Assembly (NCBI GenBank): GCA_964199315.1 | Contig: OZ116706.1 | Location: 24,800,001-24,864,000, forward strand | Reading direction: 5' to 3' | DNA from: Orbicella franksi | Taxonomy: Eukaryota | DNA length: 64,000 bases | Shown here: positions 15,620 to 64,000 of the stretch, in pieces | Layout: each line of letters begins with the position of its first letter | How positions within the stretch are numbered: the first letter of the stretch is position 1 | Translations under genes and position numbers: made by a program | Notes under the pieces: generated by a model | Seen by the model: only the letters and a program-made list of their open reading frames with translations | Told to the model about the DNA's origin: nothing | Databases searched by the model: none

Positions 15620-15955
15620 TATAAAAGCTTTCTGATGGGAAAAATGGAAGTAGTCTCCCATCTTCCTTGTATTTTCTGACCTCCACTTTATATTTAGAAT
15701 GGGCAGCCCTGCATCTTATCTCTATCATTTTACCACTGGTTTTCCTGAACGGTCCCTCTCCATTCCTGTTATCGTGTTGTATTTCCTCCTGTCTATTATC
15801 TTTAACTCACAAATGCCTATGAAGTCTCGCAAGGTGTTCCTGGCTACTCCATATGACTCCATAGCATGCATGAGGGAACAATTTTCTTTTATCAATACTT
15901 GAAGTACACTGTTGTAGTGAGCGTGTATCAGACTTAGATCCAGCCCTGTCACTGT
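15620..15955 (-). pseudogene. CCDC106-like C-terminal domain, copy 2
   Basis: Acceptor ttcttacag, then HYNSVLQVLIKENCSLMHAMESYGVARNTLRDFIGICELKIID..(frameshift)IEIRCRAAHSKYKVEVRKYKEDGRLLPFF. Parallels CCDC106 RY..IL..F....M..A...H.VDRNT...PIAEL..LLLP. Confidence 0.6.
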
Positions 15956-17324
15956 AAGAAGAAATATTTAAAAAATTATATTGAGTAAAAGTGTTGTTTT
16001 CAATGTGTTTTCTTTTAGGCAAAGAAAATACATTTTGCTAACGACCTTATCTTTTTCCAAATGCACTGATTACCTAAACTCAATTATCTATTTATCTATG
16101 CACGTGGTCCTTGTTGAGCTGTTTTCATTCATGCAAGTTTAGAGTACCTTAACTCCTTCTCAATTCGCATTTCTTTATTTCTATTCCTTGATAATGGCCT
16201 CATGATGTTGCCAAAATGTCCCTTTGTGCAATCAAATTAAGTTCAATCTATTTTTCATAAATTAAGGTAATTCGTAAAATCTCCAAATAAATTGCACAGT
16301 GCATGTGTTTAACTAAAATCTTCACTCGTTAGCAATGAGTAATACCTATAACTTGTATCTTGGATTTAATGTACAGGTAGTCGACTCCCTTTCAGCTAAT
16401 GGTATAAATGGTATATAGGGGCAACATTTCACTATGCATACCTTTACTGTTAGGGGGTGGACGCCGACATCATTCAAATTATTCTCTAACACAAACCAAC
16501 GCTGCAACGGAGAAATGTTTTATAAACAGAAACTTCAAGCGTCGAACTTGTCTGATTCTTTAATACTTGAAATTCCGTAAAAACTGAAAATACAATGATC
16601 AATAAAACTAAATTACTACAAAATCTGAACCAAAAGAAACGATCTTAACTGAAACACATGTGGTGCGCATACTAGCAAGTTTAACAATACTAACGAATAT
16701 AAACGTAACAAATCTCGCGTATGAAAACACTACGGTCGGCAATTGATCTAAATAAAAGAATAAACAAGATAACATACCTCTTTCCCCGCTTTTATAACTC
16801 TAGTAATGGCAACGATCCTTCGATCTATCCTTTTATGAAGATAACATGTATCTAACATGCGAGTCTTATACCGAATGAAAGATAATACTGACAACTCACA
16901 GGTATACAACAAGAAAACAAAGAGGCATTGATTCGATGTAACGCTGACGCAGGTCACGCAATCACAAGTTACAGTGATATCCATAACATACCCTCCCTTT
17001 CCTTTTCTTGTCCTGGTGTTTTACCAGCTTTTTCCCTTTCTTTTTTTTCTTTTCTTCTCCTTTGTCAGTAGAAATTCCACTAGTGACTTCTATGGATTGG
17101 CTTTCACTCTCTGATTTCCTCTTACCTAACACAATAAAAATTAATTTACCATAAGATGATTTAATTCTGACAGTCTTGATTTCATTAAATGAAATTAATG
17201 TATGGAAGTTTGCATTATTAAGTTGGTGGCTAATCCTCAAGAGCTTAAAATAATGTAACACACTTTTGCTATAATATCTGTAACTTGTTATTGTAACATG
17301 TTGTTGTAACATTTCTCTTTGCAT

Positions 17325-52069: not shown

Positions 52070-55000
52070 TGTAAATTTGGTATACCTAATGATGGAAAAG
52101 GTGTTGGCTATGACTTGTTGTGCCCCTTTCTTATACTTCACTTCAAATGACCATCGTTGGAGTCTCATGCGCATGGCTTGTAGTCACCGTGGAGCTTTGT
52201 TGAGAGGTTTCTTGAAGATACTCTCTAGTGGCTGATGATGCATTTGTACTGTGATATCTGACTTTCCATAAAGGAGACTGTCCCATTTGTCAAACGCCAA
52301 GCAGATAGCAAGACATTCCTTTTCAATCACAGCGTATCTCTGTTCAGTTTCTGTTAGAGTGTTGGAGTAAAATGCCACTGGTTAATCATTTTGCAAGAGC
52401 ACTCCACCAATCCCAACACCAGGTGCATCCACCTGAAGGGTTACAGGCTATTCTGGATTGAAATAGCACAAAACAGGGGCGTGAGCAATGAGTTCCTTAG
52501 ACTCACCAAAAGCTTTGTCATGTGAGTCAGTCCACTGGAAAGTGACATCTTTGTGGGTTAATTCTCTTAAAGGCTTGACCACGTCACTCCATTTTGGACA
52601 AAATCTTGTAAGGAAATTGAGCATACCCAAATTACGCTGAGCAGCACGTGGGTCTGCAGGTTTGGGCATGTTTGAGATAGCTTCCACCATGGTTGGAACT
52701 GGGCTAACCCCTTCAGGACTGAGCTGGAGTCCCATGAAGATCACCTTTTGAGTTTTGAACCTCCACTTGGCTAGGTTCAGTTTGAGTTTCACTTCTTCCA
52801 TTTGCTGCAGGAATTGTAAAGATTCTCATCGTGATCTTTCTCGGCCCCCTCCTGTGTTTGTCCACATCCATAAATAAGAACATCATCAGCAATGTTGCAG
52901 ATACCTTTCAATCCTGCAAGGGCTTCCTGCTGTCTTGCTTGGTACTCCTCAGGTCCACTGGAGACACTGTAGGGTAACCGAAGCCACCGGTACCTGCCAA
53001 AAGGTGTGTGGAATGTTGTGGCAATCTTGATTCGTGATCTAGAAGTATATTGACGAGATCAGACATCGCATCTGCAACTGGAAAACACTTTGCACCGTTC
53101 AGTTAGGGCAAAATGTCCTCGAAGCGAGGAATTGGATGCTTGGGGACTCTTATCGCCTTGTTAATGGTGTTTGATGGGTCCAAACAGATTCTAAATTTGT
53201 CCTTTGTCTCTCTAATTGTCATGTTACAGCACCAAGCTGTTGGCTCATACTGTCGGCAAATTTTCCCTTCGCTTTCCATCTTGTCTAACTGCCCTTTGAT
53301 TCTGGCATGTCTTGCTACTGGTTGCCGGTGGATGGCATCATGGACTGGAGTCACTGTCGGGTCTAAATCAAAAGAAACAGGCTTTCCAAACTGTCCCAAT
53401 CCTGTATGCACATCAGGAAATACTTTGAGAACCCACTCAAGAGTCATATTGGCAGGGCAGGATGGCAACGATGTGTTTGGATGCGGAACATCAAACATCC
53501 ACGGTGCTGGCGTCTCCCTGGCATGCGAGTTCTCAGTAAGGTGTTGTTGGCAGTTGTACTGGGGGCTCAGAGTGGGGTTTCTGAAGTGTTGCAGTGCCAC
53601 GTGATGTTCCAAGTGAATGAATTTCATCTGCACGGATCTTCACCAGTCCCAGCTTCACACAGTCCAAGCCAGACAGGAGGGGTGGCTTTCCTTGTATGTG
53701 CGAGTCTCTCAAAACATGGAATGTGAGGAGGTGGTACCCTGCTGTGCTTTCAGCTAGTAACTGCAGTTTACCCATGGGTGTGAGTCTAGAGTTGTCATAG
53801 GTGAATAAGGTGGCTTTACTAGGGGTGAGGTAGTTTGTGATCTTCTGCCCAATAGGAATTAATGATTAAGCATGTTTTTCTGGCAGTGTGTTGCAAGTGG
53901 AGGCAGTATTTAACTGCACTCTGATAGATTTGATTAGGTCCTTGGTCACACCTGGTTTCAAGTGGCTGAAGAACTTACGGCCCACCATGGCGCCATGAGG
54001 ATTTTGCAAAGTGCTGTAGACACTTTGAGCATACTTTTCTGGTTAGATATCCACCTCGAATAGGTCAGTTTCATACTCGTCCCCTAAACTGGCATCAAGA
54101 TGGTGTGCCAGGCTGGAGCTGGCTACAGGGGATGCTCCCATTCAACATGTGTGGGCAGTGTCCTATTCTCCCACAGCCCTTCCTAGAGCATCGCTTGTTT
54201 GAAGCTGGGCATACAGAGCAAGGGTGTGGAGGACCTGCACAATACTGATGGGTGTCAGTTTTGAATTGGCGCTTAGACAGATCTTGACCCCAGTTTTGCT
54301 CGGACTTTGGGGGTGTCTTTGTGCCTTTGTAGTTACCCTGACCCTGACCCCAGTTTTGCTCCGACTTTGAGGGCGACTTTGTGCCGGTGTAGTTTACTTG
54401 TTGTTTGGGGCCTTTAGCTTGCTGCATTATTGCTTTAGCCTTCTCACATTGCTCAAAGTTCTTAGCTACCTGTAACATTGTTTTAAATGAGACGATTTCT
54501 TACATTGTTTTATCTCTGTGGCCCTTATCTAGTAGTTTTACCATCAGTCTCTCGTTGTTGATCCCTGATATGAATTTATCTCTGGGTAACTGATCTTCAC
54601 ATTTAGCACAGTACTCAAGTCTCCTACCTTGTTGTTTAACTCTTCCTTCCCAGGCTGTGACAGATTCTTGGTCTTCCTGTTTCATTTGGTCGAAACTTTG
54701 TTCTTTCCTTTAGGACTCCTTTGCTAGCCATGAAGTGTTCCTGCAAGTGCTTGAGTATAATGTTCGGTTCTTTTGCTGCTTCCTCTGATAGTTGAAAGCT
54801 GTGTACAAGGTTTTCGAGTTCTTTGTTACCAGCAATGGCAGAACGGAAAGCTGCCAAAGCTTTTCCTTTTGAAAGCCACTTTGGCTCAACAGGCACAGGA
54901 TCCGCTCCTTCTTCTGTTGCTTCGGGTGGAGGCTCACTATCATACCATCCATTGAGCTCACACCAATCTTTGAATATCTAAATGAACTTTTCACAATTTC

Positions 55001-55399: not shown

Positions 55400-56666
55400 T
55401 GTTAGTGAATGTAGAAGTCTTTCCTTGAGTCTCATTTAAGAAAATCTATCCATATTTCTTTTTAACCTCCAAAAACGCATGGATTAATGAAGAATTAGTG
55501 GAAGACGGGCTGAAAATGGTTTGGAGCAAAGTCGGTGATTTGAGTTGCCAAAAGTCGATGCTTGCATGGGACTCATTTTGTGCACATCTGTCACAACCAA
55601 TTTAGAGGACACTGCAGTCACTGAACACAGAGTGTGCAGTTATTCCTGGAGGGAAGACAGGCTTACTCCAACCTCTTGATGTCTGCATCAACAAACCGTT
55701 CAAAGATCGCCTTAGAAGCAAGTGGCAGCAGTGGATGATATCTGGAGAACAAATCTTGACTGCTACCAACCGTATGTGTAAAGCTGAGTTGAATGTGATC
55801 TGCAACTGGATCAAGCAAGCATGGGATGATATTCCAACCGAGATGATTCAGAAATCTTTCCGCAAGTACTGTATCACTAATGCAATTGACGGAACCAAGG
55901 ATGATGAAGTATGGGAGCAGGAAAGTGAAGACCCTTTCGAGGACGTGGACGATGCAGGGCTGATTGACGGTGAGCTGTACTACGCTGATGCATACGAGAA
56001 GGAACAAGTAGGACTTGATCCAGCAACCTATGAAATGATGTTTGGAAGCAGTGATGATGAGGAGGACTTCTATGGCTTCTAATAGCTTTTTACAGCTGAA
56101 CATGAGTTTATTACACTTCATTCCAGAACTTTTCCGTTGACATGTAAATACCTGGTGGTTATTGCCTTTTTTTATATTACAATGTAAAGAAATTCTTATC
56201 TCTCAATTTTGTTTAACCATTGCAAGACAAGTTACAGAAACGGTGCTTTGTGTAATACCCACAAAACTCTTAAAAACATCGCGCTACTTCCGGTGTCAAG
56301 TTTTCCATCTTCCAATCCGATTGAATGCCTGGTTACTAAGCTACACACGTTCGACAAACACTCAAGCAAAAATCTATGGAAAAAACGGTGTTGAATGAAG
56401 AAATACCTGTCAACAAATTCCAGAAAAAGGTCAAACATATGTCAAAAATGGTGGAAACAATGTTCATTATATTAAAGAGCTAAAATTGTGGGTAAGATTT
56501 TGAAGTATTTTTCATTTCAATGTTAAAAGTGAGTTTACGTTCGATGAACAAGACTCCTAAAGGCTCGACTTTGGATTTCTTTCAAAAAACTTTTTTCCAA
56601 AATTCAAGTTGCTAAACTCAGGGTGCGGCTTATCTGTGAGTGGAGCTTATCTGCGGGTGTTTACGG
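55400..56666 (+). mobile_element. pogo-type transposon, 3' half
   Basis: AWINEELV..KSMLAWDSFCAHL..LQPLDVCINKPFKDRLRSKWQQW..NWIKQAWDDIPTEMIQKSF..NAIDGTKDD, an acidic tail, and a right TIR ..GGGTGTTTACGG followed by TA at 56667. Confidence 0.85.
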
Positions 56667-57825: not shown

Positions 57826-58289
57826 CAAAATAGTGAATCCTACAGCAATCAAAATACAATGGGTGGTTGCTAGTTGTTACCACATGTTAGTGTTTCACAT
57901 CAGACTTATGGTTGTGAAAAAATGTTATCTTCGATTAAGAATTATAAAGGGCATGTCACATACAGATTTTAACATTTTGAACAGTGTTAAGGATCACAGG
58001 GTCCAAAATCATTCAAAGAATTCGATGTTTGTCATAAAGTAAATACTATAGAAACTACGTCATAGTAGGAAGATAAATTAAAAATACAGCACTGTTGTCC
58101 ACAGGCTAACCCTGAAATTAAGGTCATTCCTCACATTTGCATTGTGTGTCCTTACTGCGCATAATTTATGGTGATAATTCCGTGGTACACAGATTTCCCC
58201 AAAACGACTTATATAGTCTGAAAGAGCATGATTTCTTCTACAAATTAGTGAAATAAAATTTTTGGGTAATTAGAATCATGAGCGCCATT

Positions 58290-58560
58290 TAATATCCACA
58301 CCCCCCTATGGATGAGCTGTTTTGTTTGGACAACCCTCAGAAAATCACTTTCACCCACGACCCCTCGGAAATATCTATGGATGAGCTTATTTTGATAGAT
58401 ACCCCTCAGAAATGTCTATGGATGAGGTTATTTTTCTTATATACCCCTCAGAAATGTCTATGGATGAAGTTATTTTTCTTATGTACCCCTCAGAAATGTC
58501 TATTTAAACAAAAATGAGTTCATTTTTCTATTATTCCCCTCTCAAGAGGCTGTATGGATT
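58290..58560. repeat. ~3.5 copies of a 42-bp tandem unit inside a MITE-like sequence
   Basis: acccctcagaaatgtctatggatgaggttatttttcttatat at 58360, 58401, 58443 and 58485. Confidence 0.85.
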
Positions 58561-59795
58561 GGTCCCCAATTTGTTAAAATAACATGTGCCAGTTACAGTA
58601 ACATGTACATAAACAATAAACACGTTACTTTTTTTATCAAGTTGCCTTGACAATAAGCAGAGTTGTAGGGATGATAACAAGATTATGCCATCTTAGGTTC
58701 CACTTCAGATTTCTTTACACAAAATTTTCTCTTGGTTTGTGCCGCCAGGCCTCCAGTACATATTAAGCAAAGCTCTGCACCCAGAAATGTATTTTTCGAA
58801 CAGAATTATTTGCCCAGTCTGTTTAAGAAGGTTTCAAACATTTCTTCCAAATCTAACTCTGCAATATTATACATGTTTCACACTTCCTTTCCCATGGGGA
58901 GGGGGAACGTTCATAAAAAATTGATAGGGGTGTTGTCAGAAATTTTTTGGGGGGATTCCCTAGAAGGTATAGAATACCACAATCTTGATTTACGGGCTTG
59001 GTTCAAATTCACTCTCTCCACTAAAAGATACTTAATTTCGGAGAGTAGCTCCTGTCATAGTTATTTTCACATTAATACCCTAGCTAGAAGATACTGAAAT
59101 TACTCAATAGTGTTAATTTCGAACCAACACAATTAAGTTTAACCCTTAATATAATTTATATATAGTGGGTACGATGAGCCCCCATGCCTCTTTTATGAGA
59201 GTTCCTCATGCTCCTTACAACACCAACAATATTATGATAATATATTGTGGAATGCCTCACCCATGTGTAATGCTTATTTCCACTGTAGATAAAAAAAAAA
59301 AAACAAAACTACTTTGATTGCTCCACTATTTTAAATAGCAAAGCAAATCAGGGCATATGGAAGAATATATATTCATCAAGCTGTATAACATTCATTTCAC
59401 TTGTGTACTAGTATGTCACAAAAAAATGCACTTAGCTCAAAGCAAGTTTAAGGGTATCACTCCAATGAAACAGGCGGGGTGGGGAGTTGTGCACCATTTC
59501 CCTTTTTTTTTCTTTCAGATGCAGGATTTTTTTCAGGTTAATGTACCCAAACCCCACACCCTACCCTCTCTAGCCATTTTTCCTGATCACATTACGGACG
59601 TACCACGTAACCCAATTTGGAAAGCTTCATGTGATAGTCATTTGAGTTTCAAACGAACTAAAATTGCACTAATGTTGAACTGATCAGAAGGCTTGTTTTT
59701 GGCTCTTTTCACTCTGTCCAAGGTTAAATGGTCTGTATCGCAGTTATCATATTGTTTGGAGGACACAAGCTACATATAGAAGGCTATCAAAACAG

Positions 59796-62700
59796 TTATT
59801 TCTTCAGACGGAGCGTCCCTGAAATAAGGCTTGGTAGGACTGGAATACTGTACACATATCCAGGTTCATCCAAAAAAACCAGCTCGATATCATCGTCATC
59901 ATAGTCAAATGACTGCACCTCTGCCTCGTACCAACCTTGAAAAAAAAATTAATAGCTTTGTAAATGCAGAAGGAATTAGGGAATAGTAGCACCAAGTCAC
60001 ATAAGTTCTCAGTTTATGTGGTTCTTGACTTTCTTCTGTATGTGGTGTCATGTTAACAGAATTACTGGGGACATTCACTCAATAATCAGCCTGGACATGA
60101 CGATATAATATATTCTTGATAGTGAATACATGAAAATCACTATATGTGCACTGTGGGTGATAGGGTATAGGGTATGAGTATATTACAAACTCGCAAAGTG
60201 AACAGCTCCCAATTCATCAGCTGGTTGAGCACTGCATCAGTATCACAGAGGTCGTGGATTTGAATCCCGTTCAAGCCTGAAATTTTTTCTGGCGTTCTTT
60301 TCTAAACGGCTCAAGTTGAGTTCAAGTTGATGATTGTTCATTTGTTAAATATAGATCTTATGAAACAAAACAAACACACATACCAGCTGGCCACTCCCTG
60401 TCCACTAGGTCATCTTTTGTCCATTTAAATTCAACAATGGCCCAAATCTGACATATTTCCTCATAGCTGCCAAGCTTTTTCTCTGTGGATAGTGCAAGTT
60501 TGACCTTTCCTGCGGTGGCCTCTTTCTCTATGCAGTACTTGTAAGTGACACCTACTTCTGTGTCAAATTCCACCACCATTGTGTCACTGTCCTTTATGTA
60601 CTGTCTGACAGTTCCAACATACCACCCTAGAACAAAAAAACATTCTCTTATTGTTTTGTTGGGTTGAGGGAAATGGAATTGGTATTTATATTATACTCTT
60701 CCTACTGTCTGTGTTGAACAAAGTGGTTGCAAACATTACGCAAGGGACTAAAACACTCTGAAATGTCAATTATCGATGTCTCATTCAAATAAGTTGGTCA
60801 ACTTGCAAATATTTAGCTTCATAAAATACATAACTATCATCGTTACTCCTTGTCAATGACAGCATTAAATCGTTTTTTGAGTGCTGATTTATTGACTATT
60901 ATTAAACATTGTTGTCATATACCCCTGTAACTTGTTTTCAAATGAGTTATAAATTCCCTTACCCGATTTCCATCCAGATGTTCCAACTTCATCCTTGCTC
61001 CATGATACTAGAACCCTAGCACCCACTGATCTCATGGCTTCCAACGTCACAGGGACATTTTTGCGAAGGTGGTTCTTTTCGTGCTGCAACTTCTGGTAAA
61101 TAGAAAGTTCATCACTTAGAGGAGTCAGGGCTTCCTTGAGATTGTCCAGTGATAGACCATCCGTCACTGGCAGGAATGCATTTTGCTTTTGCGGAGGAGT
61201 GGACGCCCTATCTCTTGGTTGCATCAAAATTATTGAGGTACCTGACAGCATGGCAAACTTTCTCCTCTTGAGGATTACTTTGGGATCTTCCAAGTAAAGG
61301 CTTTTCTCTGCAATCATGAGGGTTCTTGTTGCATTAATGATGTTCCTTATGGCTTCAAGTTCCCTATGGAAGGCGAAATAGCTTCTTCCTCGTCAAACCA
61401 TGCTAACTCGAGCAACCAATTCATCTTTGTTGCCACTATCCAAAACATTGTGGACTCATAAGATTTCTCTCAGCCTATACACGGACACTTTGGCAATTTC
61501 CGTTACAAAATCTGGAATGCAGAGGACATTAGCACCGTACTCTACAAGAGGGGGTGGTTTAGCACAGTCTCTTTTGTCTGATAGATGCTTTACACACGTG
61601 TTTTTTCCCTTCGATCGATGGTCCCTCTTTACGACACAACTGCTGAAGGTGTTCTTTATCATTCTCCTGATAAAGCGGTTCCTGGGACCAATACTCTCTT
61701 TGTCATTTGCAAATGATTTATCCACCTTTTCTTTGTACTCCTGACAGAATGTTGTCACATCTGTTTCGGTGCACCAGGTTAGAAACAATATGGAAGGCAA
61801 GATGTTTTCAACACCATTAGGAAACACTTTCTATGTCATTTCCAAATTTTTGAAGGAAGAAATGCTCCAGGTGTGTCTGAAACAATTTGCGTTTAATTTT
61901 TGGATCTTCTCTAAGGGTAGGTAATACATTTCACCACCAGTGGCCATCCATCTGACATAGTCAGGCACAGGTTGCACAGTGAATAATGTTGTTTCCAACT
62001 CACACTCAATATTTGGGTTGAATATTATAGGGGAATATTTATCAATCCAGCAGGTCCTCTGTCCTGCTTCGTGAAACGTGTTCTGCAGAATTTGGTAGTC
62101 TTCCCTGTGGCTTCCTGTGTAATCTTCATCCAAGTCCCATACGGTTGCAACCTCCCTCCACAAATCGTTTTTAATGGGATGGTACTGTAGGATGTCATCA
62201 GCCTTCCTTTTTTTCTTCATTAAATACGAAATTTTCCTGCCCATCAATTCCACGCGTCACAACACATGGGCCATCACCATACTGTGTATTGGCTAAACAC
62301 TGCCTAACTTCCTCTGCCATGTGTTCCATGTTTGCCTTGTGTTTGTCATCTCCTGTACCATACTCTGGATAAATTCCCCTTGCTTGAGAATTTTTCATTG
62401 GACAGGGCGTGGTTTTGTGCAGCATGGACTCGTTCCACCGGATTCCTTTTGCTATGGTACTCGGCAAAAGACTTTTGAGTTACTGACTTCAATTTCAGTA
62501 TCCTCGCCAAACGTACCAACCACATTTGTAGCAAAGGGCTCGCCAGGGCCTCAGATGGTCCATTATCCACAATAAATGCAAAATGTTCCTTCAATTTCCC
62601 AGTGTGAGGGTTTCTGAACAAATGATCAAGTGCTGGATTTCTTAACAGTAGAAAGATCTCATTGACGACACGGTGTACTGTTTCTGGTTCAACATGAGAT

Positions 62701-64000
62701 AGGTTTAGAAGAGTTGCTGCTGTTCTCATTCTACGAACACTGCACACAAGCCTCTGTTCCCCTTTCTCTTCAAGATATAATGCTCTTTCCATAAGCAGGT
62801 GACTTATCGGTGTAACTGCATTCTGAGAAGACCTATTCCAGTCGTGATCAGGTAAGATTACTTTACGCCAGGTTTTTCCTGGTTTTTGAACCGAAGATAC
62901 GTCAGAGTGAATTTTTGCTTTGGCATCCTTTCGAGTCTACCAAAATACAGTTTGGCAGCAAATGTGCTAAATCCAAAGTGAGGTTTACATTTTGTGTGGA
63001 CCAATGCACGTTAATAACAAATTTGCTCTACTCCAATTCTTTGTGGCTTATGCAGGGATAAACATGCATTAATACCTCGCCCTGAATGGTGCCTTCTAGC
63101 CTGGTATGTCCTCGCATTAATTTTGAGTATAATTGAAGCATGTAGATAAACTAATACTGAATCCCTTTGGAGCTAAAGCTAGGATGGTTTCTCTTGCCTG
63201 CTGCATTATGGTGTTACTGTCTGCTGCTCTGTAAAGCACAGTGTCTGTTAGTCTGGGATGACTTTCCAGGCCTCCCCCTGCCCTTCTACACGATCACATT
63301 CTCCAAAACCAAACTCCAGAATTCCTGTAAGATCTGGAAATTCTTCGCATTTGAGTTGTCTTCCTCTCCCTTTGAATACATGACATAATTTCTCAAGTTT
63401 CGTTGATTGAAGCAGCCTGCTGCATTTCTTCCTTTTCGCTTCTTCAGTCGTTGAGGGGTCTCTTACCTGTATCTCACTCTTCGTGTCCTCAAACAATTGT
63501 AGATTACAGGCAACGGTACCATTTGAGTACTGGAAACTTCTTTTGTCTTAAACATTGGCAAATTTGCCCATGAATTTTGCACTTGTTATTTGGGTTAATA
63601 TTGCTTTGACAGTGTCCCTCTCTCGTTTACTGTCAAGATACTGCAATAAAGTATCGTACATGCTTCCAATCGCTTCCTCTACTCTGGTTCACTATGGTCT
63701 GATCTGCTTTTCCGATTTGTTGCAATGACTCTACAATCTTGACTATTTCCTTGCCATGGTTCTCAACAATGTAGCCTTTTCCATTTATGTAAACTTGTGC
63801 AACATTTAAATGTTTCAACATGATCTTGAGTAAGCGGGATGACTCAAGGTGGGAAGGCTCCTTCAAACCTTTTGATTCCTTGTACTTTTTGACAAGATCT
63901 TGCATAGGGACAAGTAACCCATTATTCATGATGTGGTACGCAAGAGATATCATTGCACTCAAGTGATTTTGTTGTTCTGAGGATCCAGCAATAAGGTCTT
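59796..64000 (-). mobile_element. Zator-like DDE transposase gene with C-terminal SAP x2 and Tudor-like x2 modules, three exons, pseudogenised
   Basis: Long exon (>64000-60963) contains VDSKDAKAKI..KVILPDHDW..FIVDNGPSE..FAEYHSKRNPVERVH, then SAP-like LQQLCRKEG.SIEGKKH.CVKHL and YRLREIL.VHNVLDSGNKDELVARV. Exons 60626-60384 and 59935-59796 each begin at G|WY with GT-AG phase-1 introns. Confidence 0.8.
60170..60340 (+). mobile_element. Degraded tRNA-derived repeat/SINE inside intron 2 of the Zator-like gene
   Basis: agctggttgagcactgcatcagtatcacagaggtcgtggatttgaatcccgttcaagcctgaa contains decayed A and B boxes. Confidence 0.6.

Follow-up and report, generated by a model that had tools for sequence, protein, structure and literature searches.

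A decayed transposase gene at the Orbicella franksi locus

Here we describe a locus at the end of a 64,000-nucleotide stretch of Orbicella franksi DNA (assembly GCA_964199315.1, contig OZ116706.1, positions 24,800,001 to 24,864,000; the whole stretch is referred to here as the window), which probably holds the 3' five to six kb of a dead cut-and-paste DNA transposon of the Zator superfamily. The transposon copy extends on the minus strand from approximately position 58282 to past 64000, and it carries a decayed three-exon transposase gene that runs from 64000 to 59796 and is truncated by the window end. Since the gene runs off the window at 64000, the N-terminal end of the transposase part (approximately 100 residues or more) is missing, as is all that precedes it.

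An initial annotation had proposed that the open reading frame (ORF) pieces on the minus strand could be joined across frameshifts into one long protein, with a Zator-like transposase core followed by two SAP-like and two Tudor-like stretches. We found that three-frame translation of the minus strand between 59500 and 64000 yields a chain of stop-free pieces bearing all of the expected motifs, and each motif that had been listed was located. Furthermore, tblastn with an intact Porites lobata protein (P0153, 1181 amino acids), which was retrieved by exhaustive HMMER search and exists as an annotated gene model, aligned residues 27-1181 with positions 63989-59790 across the frame changes. Because this alignment is collinear, our data indicate one gene rather than chance ORF pieces. 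The search for intact copies also recovered a member of the same subfamily, L057, a 6.6-kb metagenome contig found by scanning contigs with the element terminus, which shares 92.5-93.8% nucleotide identity with window positions 58285-63994. The features of the window copy are as follows.

60963-64000, minus strand, clipped at the window end: exon A, encoding the N-terminal helical region and DDE core, then a post-core domain, both SAP motifs and, after a helical linker, the initial half of Tudor-like module 1
63152-63120, minus strand: SLSTCFNYTQN motif, from translation
63100-63062, minus strand: ARRHHSGRGINAC motif, from translation
62000-63020 (approximate bounds), minus strand: RNase H-like DDE core, predicted from motifs, conservation and fold matches
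62927-62910, minus strand: DAKAKI motif, from translation
62855-62838, minus strand: LPDHDW motif, from translation
62570-62550, minus strand: VDNGPSE motif, from translation
62453-62430, minus strand: SKRNPVER motif, from translation
62927-62925, 62567-62565 and 62435-62433, minus strand: candidate catalytic triad, D of DAKAKI, D of VDNGPSE and E of SKRNPVER
61571-61651, minus strand: SAP motif 1, from tblastn of P0153 residues 803-846 (Pfam SAP at P0153 818-845), in a shifted frame in the window copy
61396-61497, minus strand: SAP motif 2, broken by an in-frame stop at 61458-61456
60961-61026, minus strand: Tudor-like module 1, first half (VGARVLVSW...GWKSG), from tblastn and translation
60627-60962, minus strand: intron 1, GT..AG, phase 1, at G/WY of module 1
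60384-60626, minus strand: exon B, encoding the remaining half of Tudor-like module 1 and, after a linker, the initial half of module 2
60624-60520, minus strand: Tudor-like module 1, second half, from translation
60447-60382 and 59933-59799, minus strand: Tudor-like module 2, from translation
59936-60383, minus strand: intron 2, GT..AG, phase 1, splitting the Gly of G/WY in module 2
59796-59935, minus strand: exon C, encoding the remaining half of Tudor-like module 2 and ending in the stop codon (59798-59796)
58516-59795, minus strand: non-coding 3' region from the stop codon to the subterminal repeats, 85-94% nucleotide identity to L057 5213-6502
58306-58515: four subterminal 42-nt tandem repeats with a CCCCTCAGAAA-like core, from a repeat search
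58282-58325, minus strand: decayed 3' terminal inverted repeat of approximately 41 bp, with the 20-mer of the terminus exact at 58285-58304

The two splice junctions proposed initially (60963/60626 and 60384/59935) are exact, and L057 and the annotated P. lobata gene model share them. Both introns interrupt the glycine of G/WY at a homologous place in each W-rich module, and the ORFs of P0003, P0021, P0155 and P0174, which represent several lineages, run into intron 1 at the same residue. The spliced coding sequence of L057 comprises 1179 codons with zero stops. When compared to L057, exon A of the window copy retains 94% nucleotide identity and has accumulated 11 frameshifting indels and 5 premature stops; in addition, the invariant Gly of module 2 is replaced by Trp, and the stop codon falls three codons ahead of that of L057. 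The copy is indeed dead, as annotated. Self-comparison of the 64-kb window did not find a second copy of the element.

A predicted RNase H-like DDE core

An AlphaFold model of P0153, built from a 49-sequence alignment, has a predicted local distance difference test (pLDDT) score of approximately 90 over residues 350-950, and its secondary structure follows the order beta1-beta2-beta3-alpha-beta4-alpha-beta5-alpha, which is RNase H-like. An ESM Atlas shape search with this model matched a PF07592 model at a template modeling (TM) score of 0.80 (by hit) over 246 amino acids, and PF07592 clusters were returned across P0153 residues 255-700 at TM scores of 0.80, 0.55 and 0.48 by hit. VIA-align superimposed the core on Mos1 mariner (Z 8.8, 189 residues, root-mean-square deviation (rmsd) 3.6 Å), with further matches to SETMAR and Sleeping Beauty (Z 7.6-8.8 together with Mos1) and to retroviral integrases (Z 8.6-8.9), while Foldseek returned Mos1 at an E-value of approximately 1e-3. 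In a language-model feature search, PF07592 clusters made up 73 of the 100 matches to the window's own 196-amino-acid piece and 72 of the 100 named matches to the intact core; the best matches were unnamed clusters from Mucoromycota and rotifers. In these models the core adopts an RNase H-like DDE fold, whose nearest relatives are PF07592 (ISAzo13/TP36) models and then Mos1 mariner. The proposal of a Zator-related core is supported by this fold, by the PF07592 models at TM 0.80, by 3-bp target-site duplications (TSDs) and by terminal inverted repeats (TIRs).

We aligned 24 cores and found D382, K384, D408, H409 and G504 (P0153 numbering) to be invariant; at least 90% of the cores retain D502 and E546. 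In the P0153 model, D382 lies after beta1, D502 after beta4 and E546 at the start of the following helix. From this position and conservation we infer a putative catalytic triad of D382, D502 and E546, or D(119)D(43)E. The DH of LPDHDW (P0153 406-411) is likewise invariant in 24 of 24 cores, and it lies in a low-confidence beta1-beta2 loop outside the classical triad.

Pfam gave no match in any ORF piece of the window. A core profile searched against a set of 5.8 billion proteins retrieved 320 family members; a PF07592-annotated protein was absent among the 120 listed, and so a sequence bridge to ISAzo13 was not obtained. Similarly, tblastn of the core against plasmids, seeking an ISAzo13 seed, gave chance matches only. 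Against PDB sequences, the core profile produced weak matches to the Ku80 C-terminal domain (E 0.04-0.07), which we took as probable chance; they map to the helical region after the catalytic Glu (profile positions 272-351).

Two SAP motifs and one or two Tudor-type modules form the tail

Both SAP-like stretches of the initial annotation exceed the Pfam cut-off in intact relatives: SAP (PF02037) scores are 30.4 bits in P0153, 35.2 in the L057 ORF, 38.1 in P0012 and 34.2 in P0021, with two stretches in each, relative to a gathering cut-off of 23.9 bits. Overall, the SAP model matches 16 of the 49 family members. The window pieces have no SAP match because one motif is frameshifted and the other has a stop.

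The model of the last 160 residues (pLDDT 81) contains two five-stranded barrels. Foldseek matched this tail to Spindlin1, the BAHCC1 TTD and ADCP1 Agenet at E-values of approximately 1e-5 and a probability of 1.0, all top matches being tandem readers of methyl marks; against Swiss-Prot models it returned Spindlins, PHF20 and ATX1. In an ESM Atlas shape search of the tail, all 10 of 10 families were Tudor-type. VIA-align placed module 2 on Spindlin1 repeat 2 (Z 8.6, 69 residues, rmsd 3.0 Å) and module 1 on PHF20L1 Tudor 1 (Z 8.0, 64 residues, rmsd 2.5 Å), scores that barely exceed the stated VIA-align background of 7-8. Since the Z-scores alone are near background, we base the call of a Tudor-type fold on the structure-match lists, which are uniformly Tudor-type. 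In our models both W-rich modules fold as Tudor-type barrels, in line with the two Tudor-like modules proposed initially, but some lineages have just one. A word-indexed search with the tail region found just two close relatives, both reading into the intron.

All seven modules compared keep both the W and the Y of GWY, and strands 1, 3 and 4 repeatedly have aromatic residues at their ends. These recurring aromatics are compatible with a putative aromatic cage and do not prove one.

The tail belongs to the transposase and is under purifying selection. In both P0014 (L006 303-5249) and P0186 (L007 10001-14251), a single intronless ORF runs from the OTU-like domain described below through core and SAP to the one or two Tudor modules, and the L057 ORF is unbroken from the linker via the SAP motifs into module 1. 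A hidden Markov model (HMM) of the module finds it, whole or intron-cut, in 24 of the 297 proteins gathered; these 24 come from at least eight lineages, and one of them is from an octocoral. The tail architecture recurs down to approximately 37% core identity, with the number of Tudor modules (one or two) differing by lineage. Between two Porites-type subfamilies the ratio of nonsynonymous to synonymous substitution rates (dN/dS) is 0.086 overall, 0.039 in the core, 0.157 in the SAP region and 0.18 and 0.10 in the Tudor modules, values that are rough because dS is saturated (above 1.2).

Element ends, target-site duplications and mobility

The P. lobata loci L003:1553-15810 and L004:1-14279 have at least 14.3 kb in common at 99.5% identity, and their homology ends abruptly approximately 1.3 kb past the stop codon, with unrelated genes beyond. 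At least the last 20 bases at this boundary occur once in the window, at 58285-58304, just outside the 42-nt repeats. The window element therefore ends near 58282 and not at 59796; the span proposed initially (59796-64000) covers the gene part, but the 3' end of the element lies at approximately 58282 and its 5' part past 64000. The outermost bases of the window terminus do not match the canonical GGGCCATTCCATTT... end, a 5-bp deletion being the probable cause, and the boundary is thus good to approximately 3 bp. Repeats homologous to the subterminal 42-nt repeats adjoin the terminus in L003 and L057, and these repeats are possible transposase-binding sites.

We found 52 metagenome loci that end in a terminus starting GGGCCATTCC and whose outer flanks are unrelated. 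This terminus of approximately 41 bp is common to the right ends of L003, L004, L057 and the window element and to both ends of 24 short copies, and an inverted copy of it occurs at L005:1844, upstream of a gene copy. The 24 loci with short two-ended copies (238-990 bp) allowed the TSD to be determined; these statistics apply to the short metagenome copies, the 5' end of the window copy lying beyond the window. We found perfect 3-bp TSDs in 16 of the 24 short copies, while 0.38 were expected (P approximately 8e-24). Flank matches of 4 bp were found in none of the 24, and matches of 2 bp (4 of 24) and of 1 bp were near chance. TIRs and a 3-bp TSD had been anticipated, and both are present, but the expected TWA-type preference is not: the duplicated triplets have no common sequence and show no preference for TWA or TAA/TTA. 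Our data indicate that the family is mobile, as it is multi-copy and has inverted ends, 3-bp TSDs and non-autonomous derivatives.

The short non-autonomous copies (L008-L059) form at least two abundant families, of approximately 275 bp and approximately 365-405 bp, with a common terminus and different interiors, and they come mostly from a few coral-associated metagenomes. In the distant, intronless L007 lineage (P0186), the ORF lies between inverted repeats of approximately 380 bp (L007:9391-9775 and 15829-16143), each of which is bounded by 22-bp inverted termini in a foldback-like arrangement that recalls the paired palindromic arms of Zator-1 of amphioxus. A clean 3-bp duplication could not be read in the L007 flanks that we inspected. 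In addition, the P. lobata gene has its stop codon inside a perfect 58-bp palindrome (L003:14447-14504).

Full-length relatives carry an OTU-like domain upstream

Full-length relatives carry an N-terminal OTU-like cysteine-protease domain, a feature missed initially, which is located beyond the window. DGNC-type and NHF-type motifs are visible in this domain, and PF02338 scores in five members (22.8, 20.4, 18.1, 16.8 and 14.3 bits) fall below the gathering cut-off of 23.3 bits. The domain is followed by a long, Ser/Thr/Pro-rich, repetitive linker of low complexity. In the intact protein the OTU-like domain and its linker precede the helical N-terminal region and the DDE core; behind the core come the pair of SAP motifs, then a helical linker, and finally either one or two Tudor-type barrels. 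The full Porites protein would be near 2000 residues. Porites proteins contain a further conserved region of approximately 300 amino acids ahead of the OTU-like domain (L003:7606-9852, L005:8509-9714), which has no Pfam match.

Relationship to known mobile elements and chromatin readers

Zator has been described as resembling ISAzo13, and both generate 3-bp duplications (Kojima, PMC10045372). The Zator-1 element of amphioxus is bounded by inverted repeats of 33 bp and duplicates TAA or TTA at its target (PMC12905397). TIRs and 3-bp TSDs are the traits that define this superfamily. Like Zator, the coral family has an ISAzo13/TP36-related transposase as judged from predicted structure, 3-bp TSDs and many short non-autonomous copies (PMC10045372, PMC12905397), and its TIRs are tens of bp long (approximately 41 bp, compared to 33 bp in Zator-1). 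Rhizophagus, the fungal host with reported Zator elements (PMC5751038), belongs to the Mucoromycota, the group of the top feature-search matches. Unlike Zator, the coral family shows no TAA/TTA preference in its TSDs, its gene is spliced in coral lineages, and its transposase of approximately 1200 to 2000 amino acids includes OTU-like, SAP and Tudor-type domains, none of which the literature searched mentions for Zator. Zator cores were published as lacking Pfam similarity (PMC5751038); the absent Pfam match to our family fits that description, yet it is no proof of membership. Bacterial ISAzo13 elements (PF07592, formerly Transposase_36/TP36) resemble the family in the predicted shape of the RNase H-like DDE core (TM 0.80 over 246 amino acids) and in the 3-bp TSD (PMC10045372), but there is no HMM-level sequence match, the bacterial proteins have no SAP, Tudor or OTU domain, and the coral family has a long conserved domain past the catalytic Glu.

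Fusions of comparable domains to transposition enzymes are known from other elements. Gypsy-10_Ec32 of Ectocarpus, which has a C-terminal Tudor domain, was called the first reported transposable element with a Tudor domain in 2025 (PMC12477816). Like this element and the chromoviral (Ty3/Gypsy) integrases with their C-terminal chromodomain, the coral family carries a C-terminal histone-reader-type domain of the same broad reader family on a DNA-joining enzyme. Those elements, however, are long terminal repeat retrotransposons with retroviral-type integrases, while the coral family is cut-and-paste, has a core of predicted IS630/ISAzo13 type and adds SAP motifs and one or two modules. OTU or Ulp1 protease domains are known in Ginger1, Helitron and Mutator elements (PMC2836005). 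In those elements a ubiquitin/SUMO-type cysteine protease is fused to or lies beside a transposition enzyme (PMC2836005), and the OTU-like domain of the coral family would be a counterpart, but the OTU-like domain is N-terminal rather than C-terminal, its Pfam scores are just below cut-off and the transposase belongs to a different superfamily.

Among chromatin readers, each module fits a single Tudor-type barrel of the Spindlin1, ADCP1, FMRP/FXR2, BAHCC1 and PHF20 kind (Z 8.0-8.6, rmsd 2.5-3.0 Å, 19-25% identity), and the GW..GWY motif of the coral family resembles the Agenet motif G.RGSWY. The tail differs from tandem Agenet/Tudor readers in that no Pfam model of these reader families matches it and in that the orientation between the modules is different.

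A possible role in chromatin targeting and alternative readings

As proposed initially, the architecture appears to be undescribed. Our searches of the full-text literature found no paper joining transposase, Tudor and SAP, nor did they turn up a Tudor, Spindlin or Agenet domain on any DNA transposase. The element would be a Zator-type transposon with a new domain architecture, of which the window copy itself is a fossil. Chromatin-reading target choice is well documented for retroelements, through chromodomains and through host tethers such as LEDGF; to our knowledge, there is little documentation of it in DNA transposons that move by cut-and-paste. In the Zator-type transposase described here, purifying selection has preserved two SAP motifs along with one or two Tudor-type modules across many lineages, and Zator, among the least studied superfamilies, gains a well-defined, richly decorated clade with ends, TSD and short derivatives.

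We hypothesize that the helical N-terminal region would bind the element ends, perhaps aided by the subterminal repeats, and that the DDE triad (D382, D502, E546) would cut and join the element at the inverted repeats of approximately 41 bp. The SAP motifs may add non-specific or AT-rich DNA binding. The Tudor-type modules might bind a methylated histone tail and so anchor the enzyme, or the entire transposition complex, there; insertion could then be steered to a given chromatin state, much as chromodomains direct chromoviral integrases. The OTU-like domain would probably act on the enzyme itself or on a host factor, removing ubiquitin or a similar tag. We regard the chromatin-targeting step by the Tudor-type modules as close to an even bet and not above it. 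More tentatively, and at somewhat less than even chances, this would be the first cut-and-paste transposase family with Tudor-type readers, SAP and an OTU-like domain, distributed in corals, octocorals and probably bivalves, whose tail steers insertion to a defined chromatin state, an independent invention of the strategy of chromoviral integrases. The intact, near-identical Porites copies make the targeting idea directly testable.

Several observations weigh against the reading of the locus given here. The window copy is itself non-functional and has no 5' part. The placement in Zator is suggested by the predicted ISAzo13-like core fold, the TIRs and the 3-bp TSD, with curated Zator elements compared by description only. 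Pfam and NCBIfam gave zero matches in the catalytic region of the 49 family members, including PF07592 and ISAzo13 models, and given this lack of sequence-level matches, it is predicted folds, language-model features and TSD length that connect the family to ISAzo13. The tail has no Pfam Tudor, Agenet or Spin-Ssty match at E-values up to 1; the best sequence matches of a seven-module profile are the Agenet proteins 6ie4 (E 0.035) and 5zwx (E 0.068), and the putative aromatic cage is read from sequence positions. The near-background Z-scores of the modules and the saturated dS given above belong here as well. Finally, when the P. lobata loci were extended to 10 kb of flank, the left repeat of an autonomous copy was not reached, and the sole candidate for the left end (L005:1844) is separated from the ORF by 6.5 kb on the upstream side. 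At least 14.3 kb in common without a left repeat implies that the autonomous element is very large or that it sits inside a larger duplicated block.

The most serious alternative, though in our view an unlikely one, accepts the element as described and assigns the barrels another ligand: they would bind DNA or RNA, a methylated non-histone protein (such as a piRNA-pathway or repair factor) or another transposase subunit, and the tail would serve assembly or evasion of silencing and not targeting. Small SH3-like barrels have many roles, and the VIA-align list also includes Spt5 KOW, ssDNA-bound PWWP and TraI domains at Z approximately 7. The absence of a Pfam reader-model match and the variation in module number are in keeping with this alternative, as is the orientation of the two modules, which is unlike that of known tandem readers (rmsd 12-14 Å over both modules). 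However, at least the top 60 Foldseek matches of the tail are all methyl-lysine or methyl-arginine readers, and the adjoining SAP motifs already provide DNA binding. In addition, we infer from their positions that the conserved W and Y lie on strands where Tudor domains form their cages.

Whether the core belongs to another branch of IS630-Tc1-mariner (Tc1/mariner, pogo, Gambol, Sailor or an unnamed branch), its likeness to ISAzo13 reflecting just a shared fold, also has to be considered; we judge this improbable. The catalytic domains of Mos1, SETMAR and Sleeping Beauty match the core at Z-scores of 7.6-8.8, its AlphaFold DB matches include proteins with mariner- and Tc1-like names, and an HMM match to PF07592 is absent. 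The last point is also true of published Zator cores, which have no Pfam similarity (PMC5751038). Moreover, the TSD is 3 bp of no fixed sequence rather than TA, and the D-to-E spacing is 43 residues compared to 34-41 in named Tc1/mariner families (PMC7386202). ISAzo13 models fit better (TM 0.80 by hit) and predominate in the feature search, and a shape search seeded from the top Mucoromycota match gave a TM score of approximately 0.7 for ISAzo13 and approximately 0.6 for IS630.

That the window holds a decayed paralogue of a domesticated single-copy host gene is very improbable. The P. lobata annotation does name relatives as ordinary genes ('SAP domain-containing protein'), the transposase gene has introns and purifying selection is strong, but the TIRs, the 3-bp TSDs and dozens of short non-autonomous derivatives contradict a host gene, as do at least two copies, 99.5% identical, at unrelated loci of one genome and 54 cluster members at 90% identity or more; furthermore, the window copy is dead and lies amid other transposon remnants. 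On the TIRs, TSDs, short derivatives and multiple near-identical copies we rejected this reading. Hardly credible at all is that the tail is a fragment of a neighboring host gene misjoined by cross-frame reading: the window tail is reachable just via frameshifts and two introns, yet core, SAP and Tudor module(s) share one uninterrupted ORF in the intronless relatives P0014 and P0186, which led us to reject it, and the continuity of the L057 ORF into module 1 and the recurrence of the architecture down to 37% core identity argue the same way.

Surroundings of the locus

The transposon copy is surrounded by the debris of other transposons. An ORF at 55735-56082 on the plus strand resembles the C-terminal end of a pogo/Tigger-type transposase, and minus-strand ORFs in 52448-54478 resemble remnants of retroelement pol/gag.

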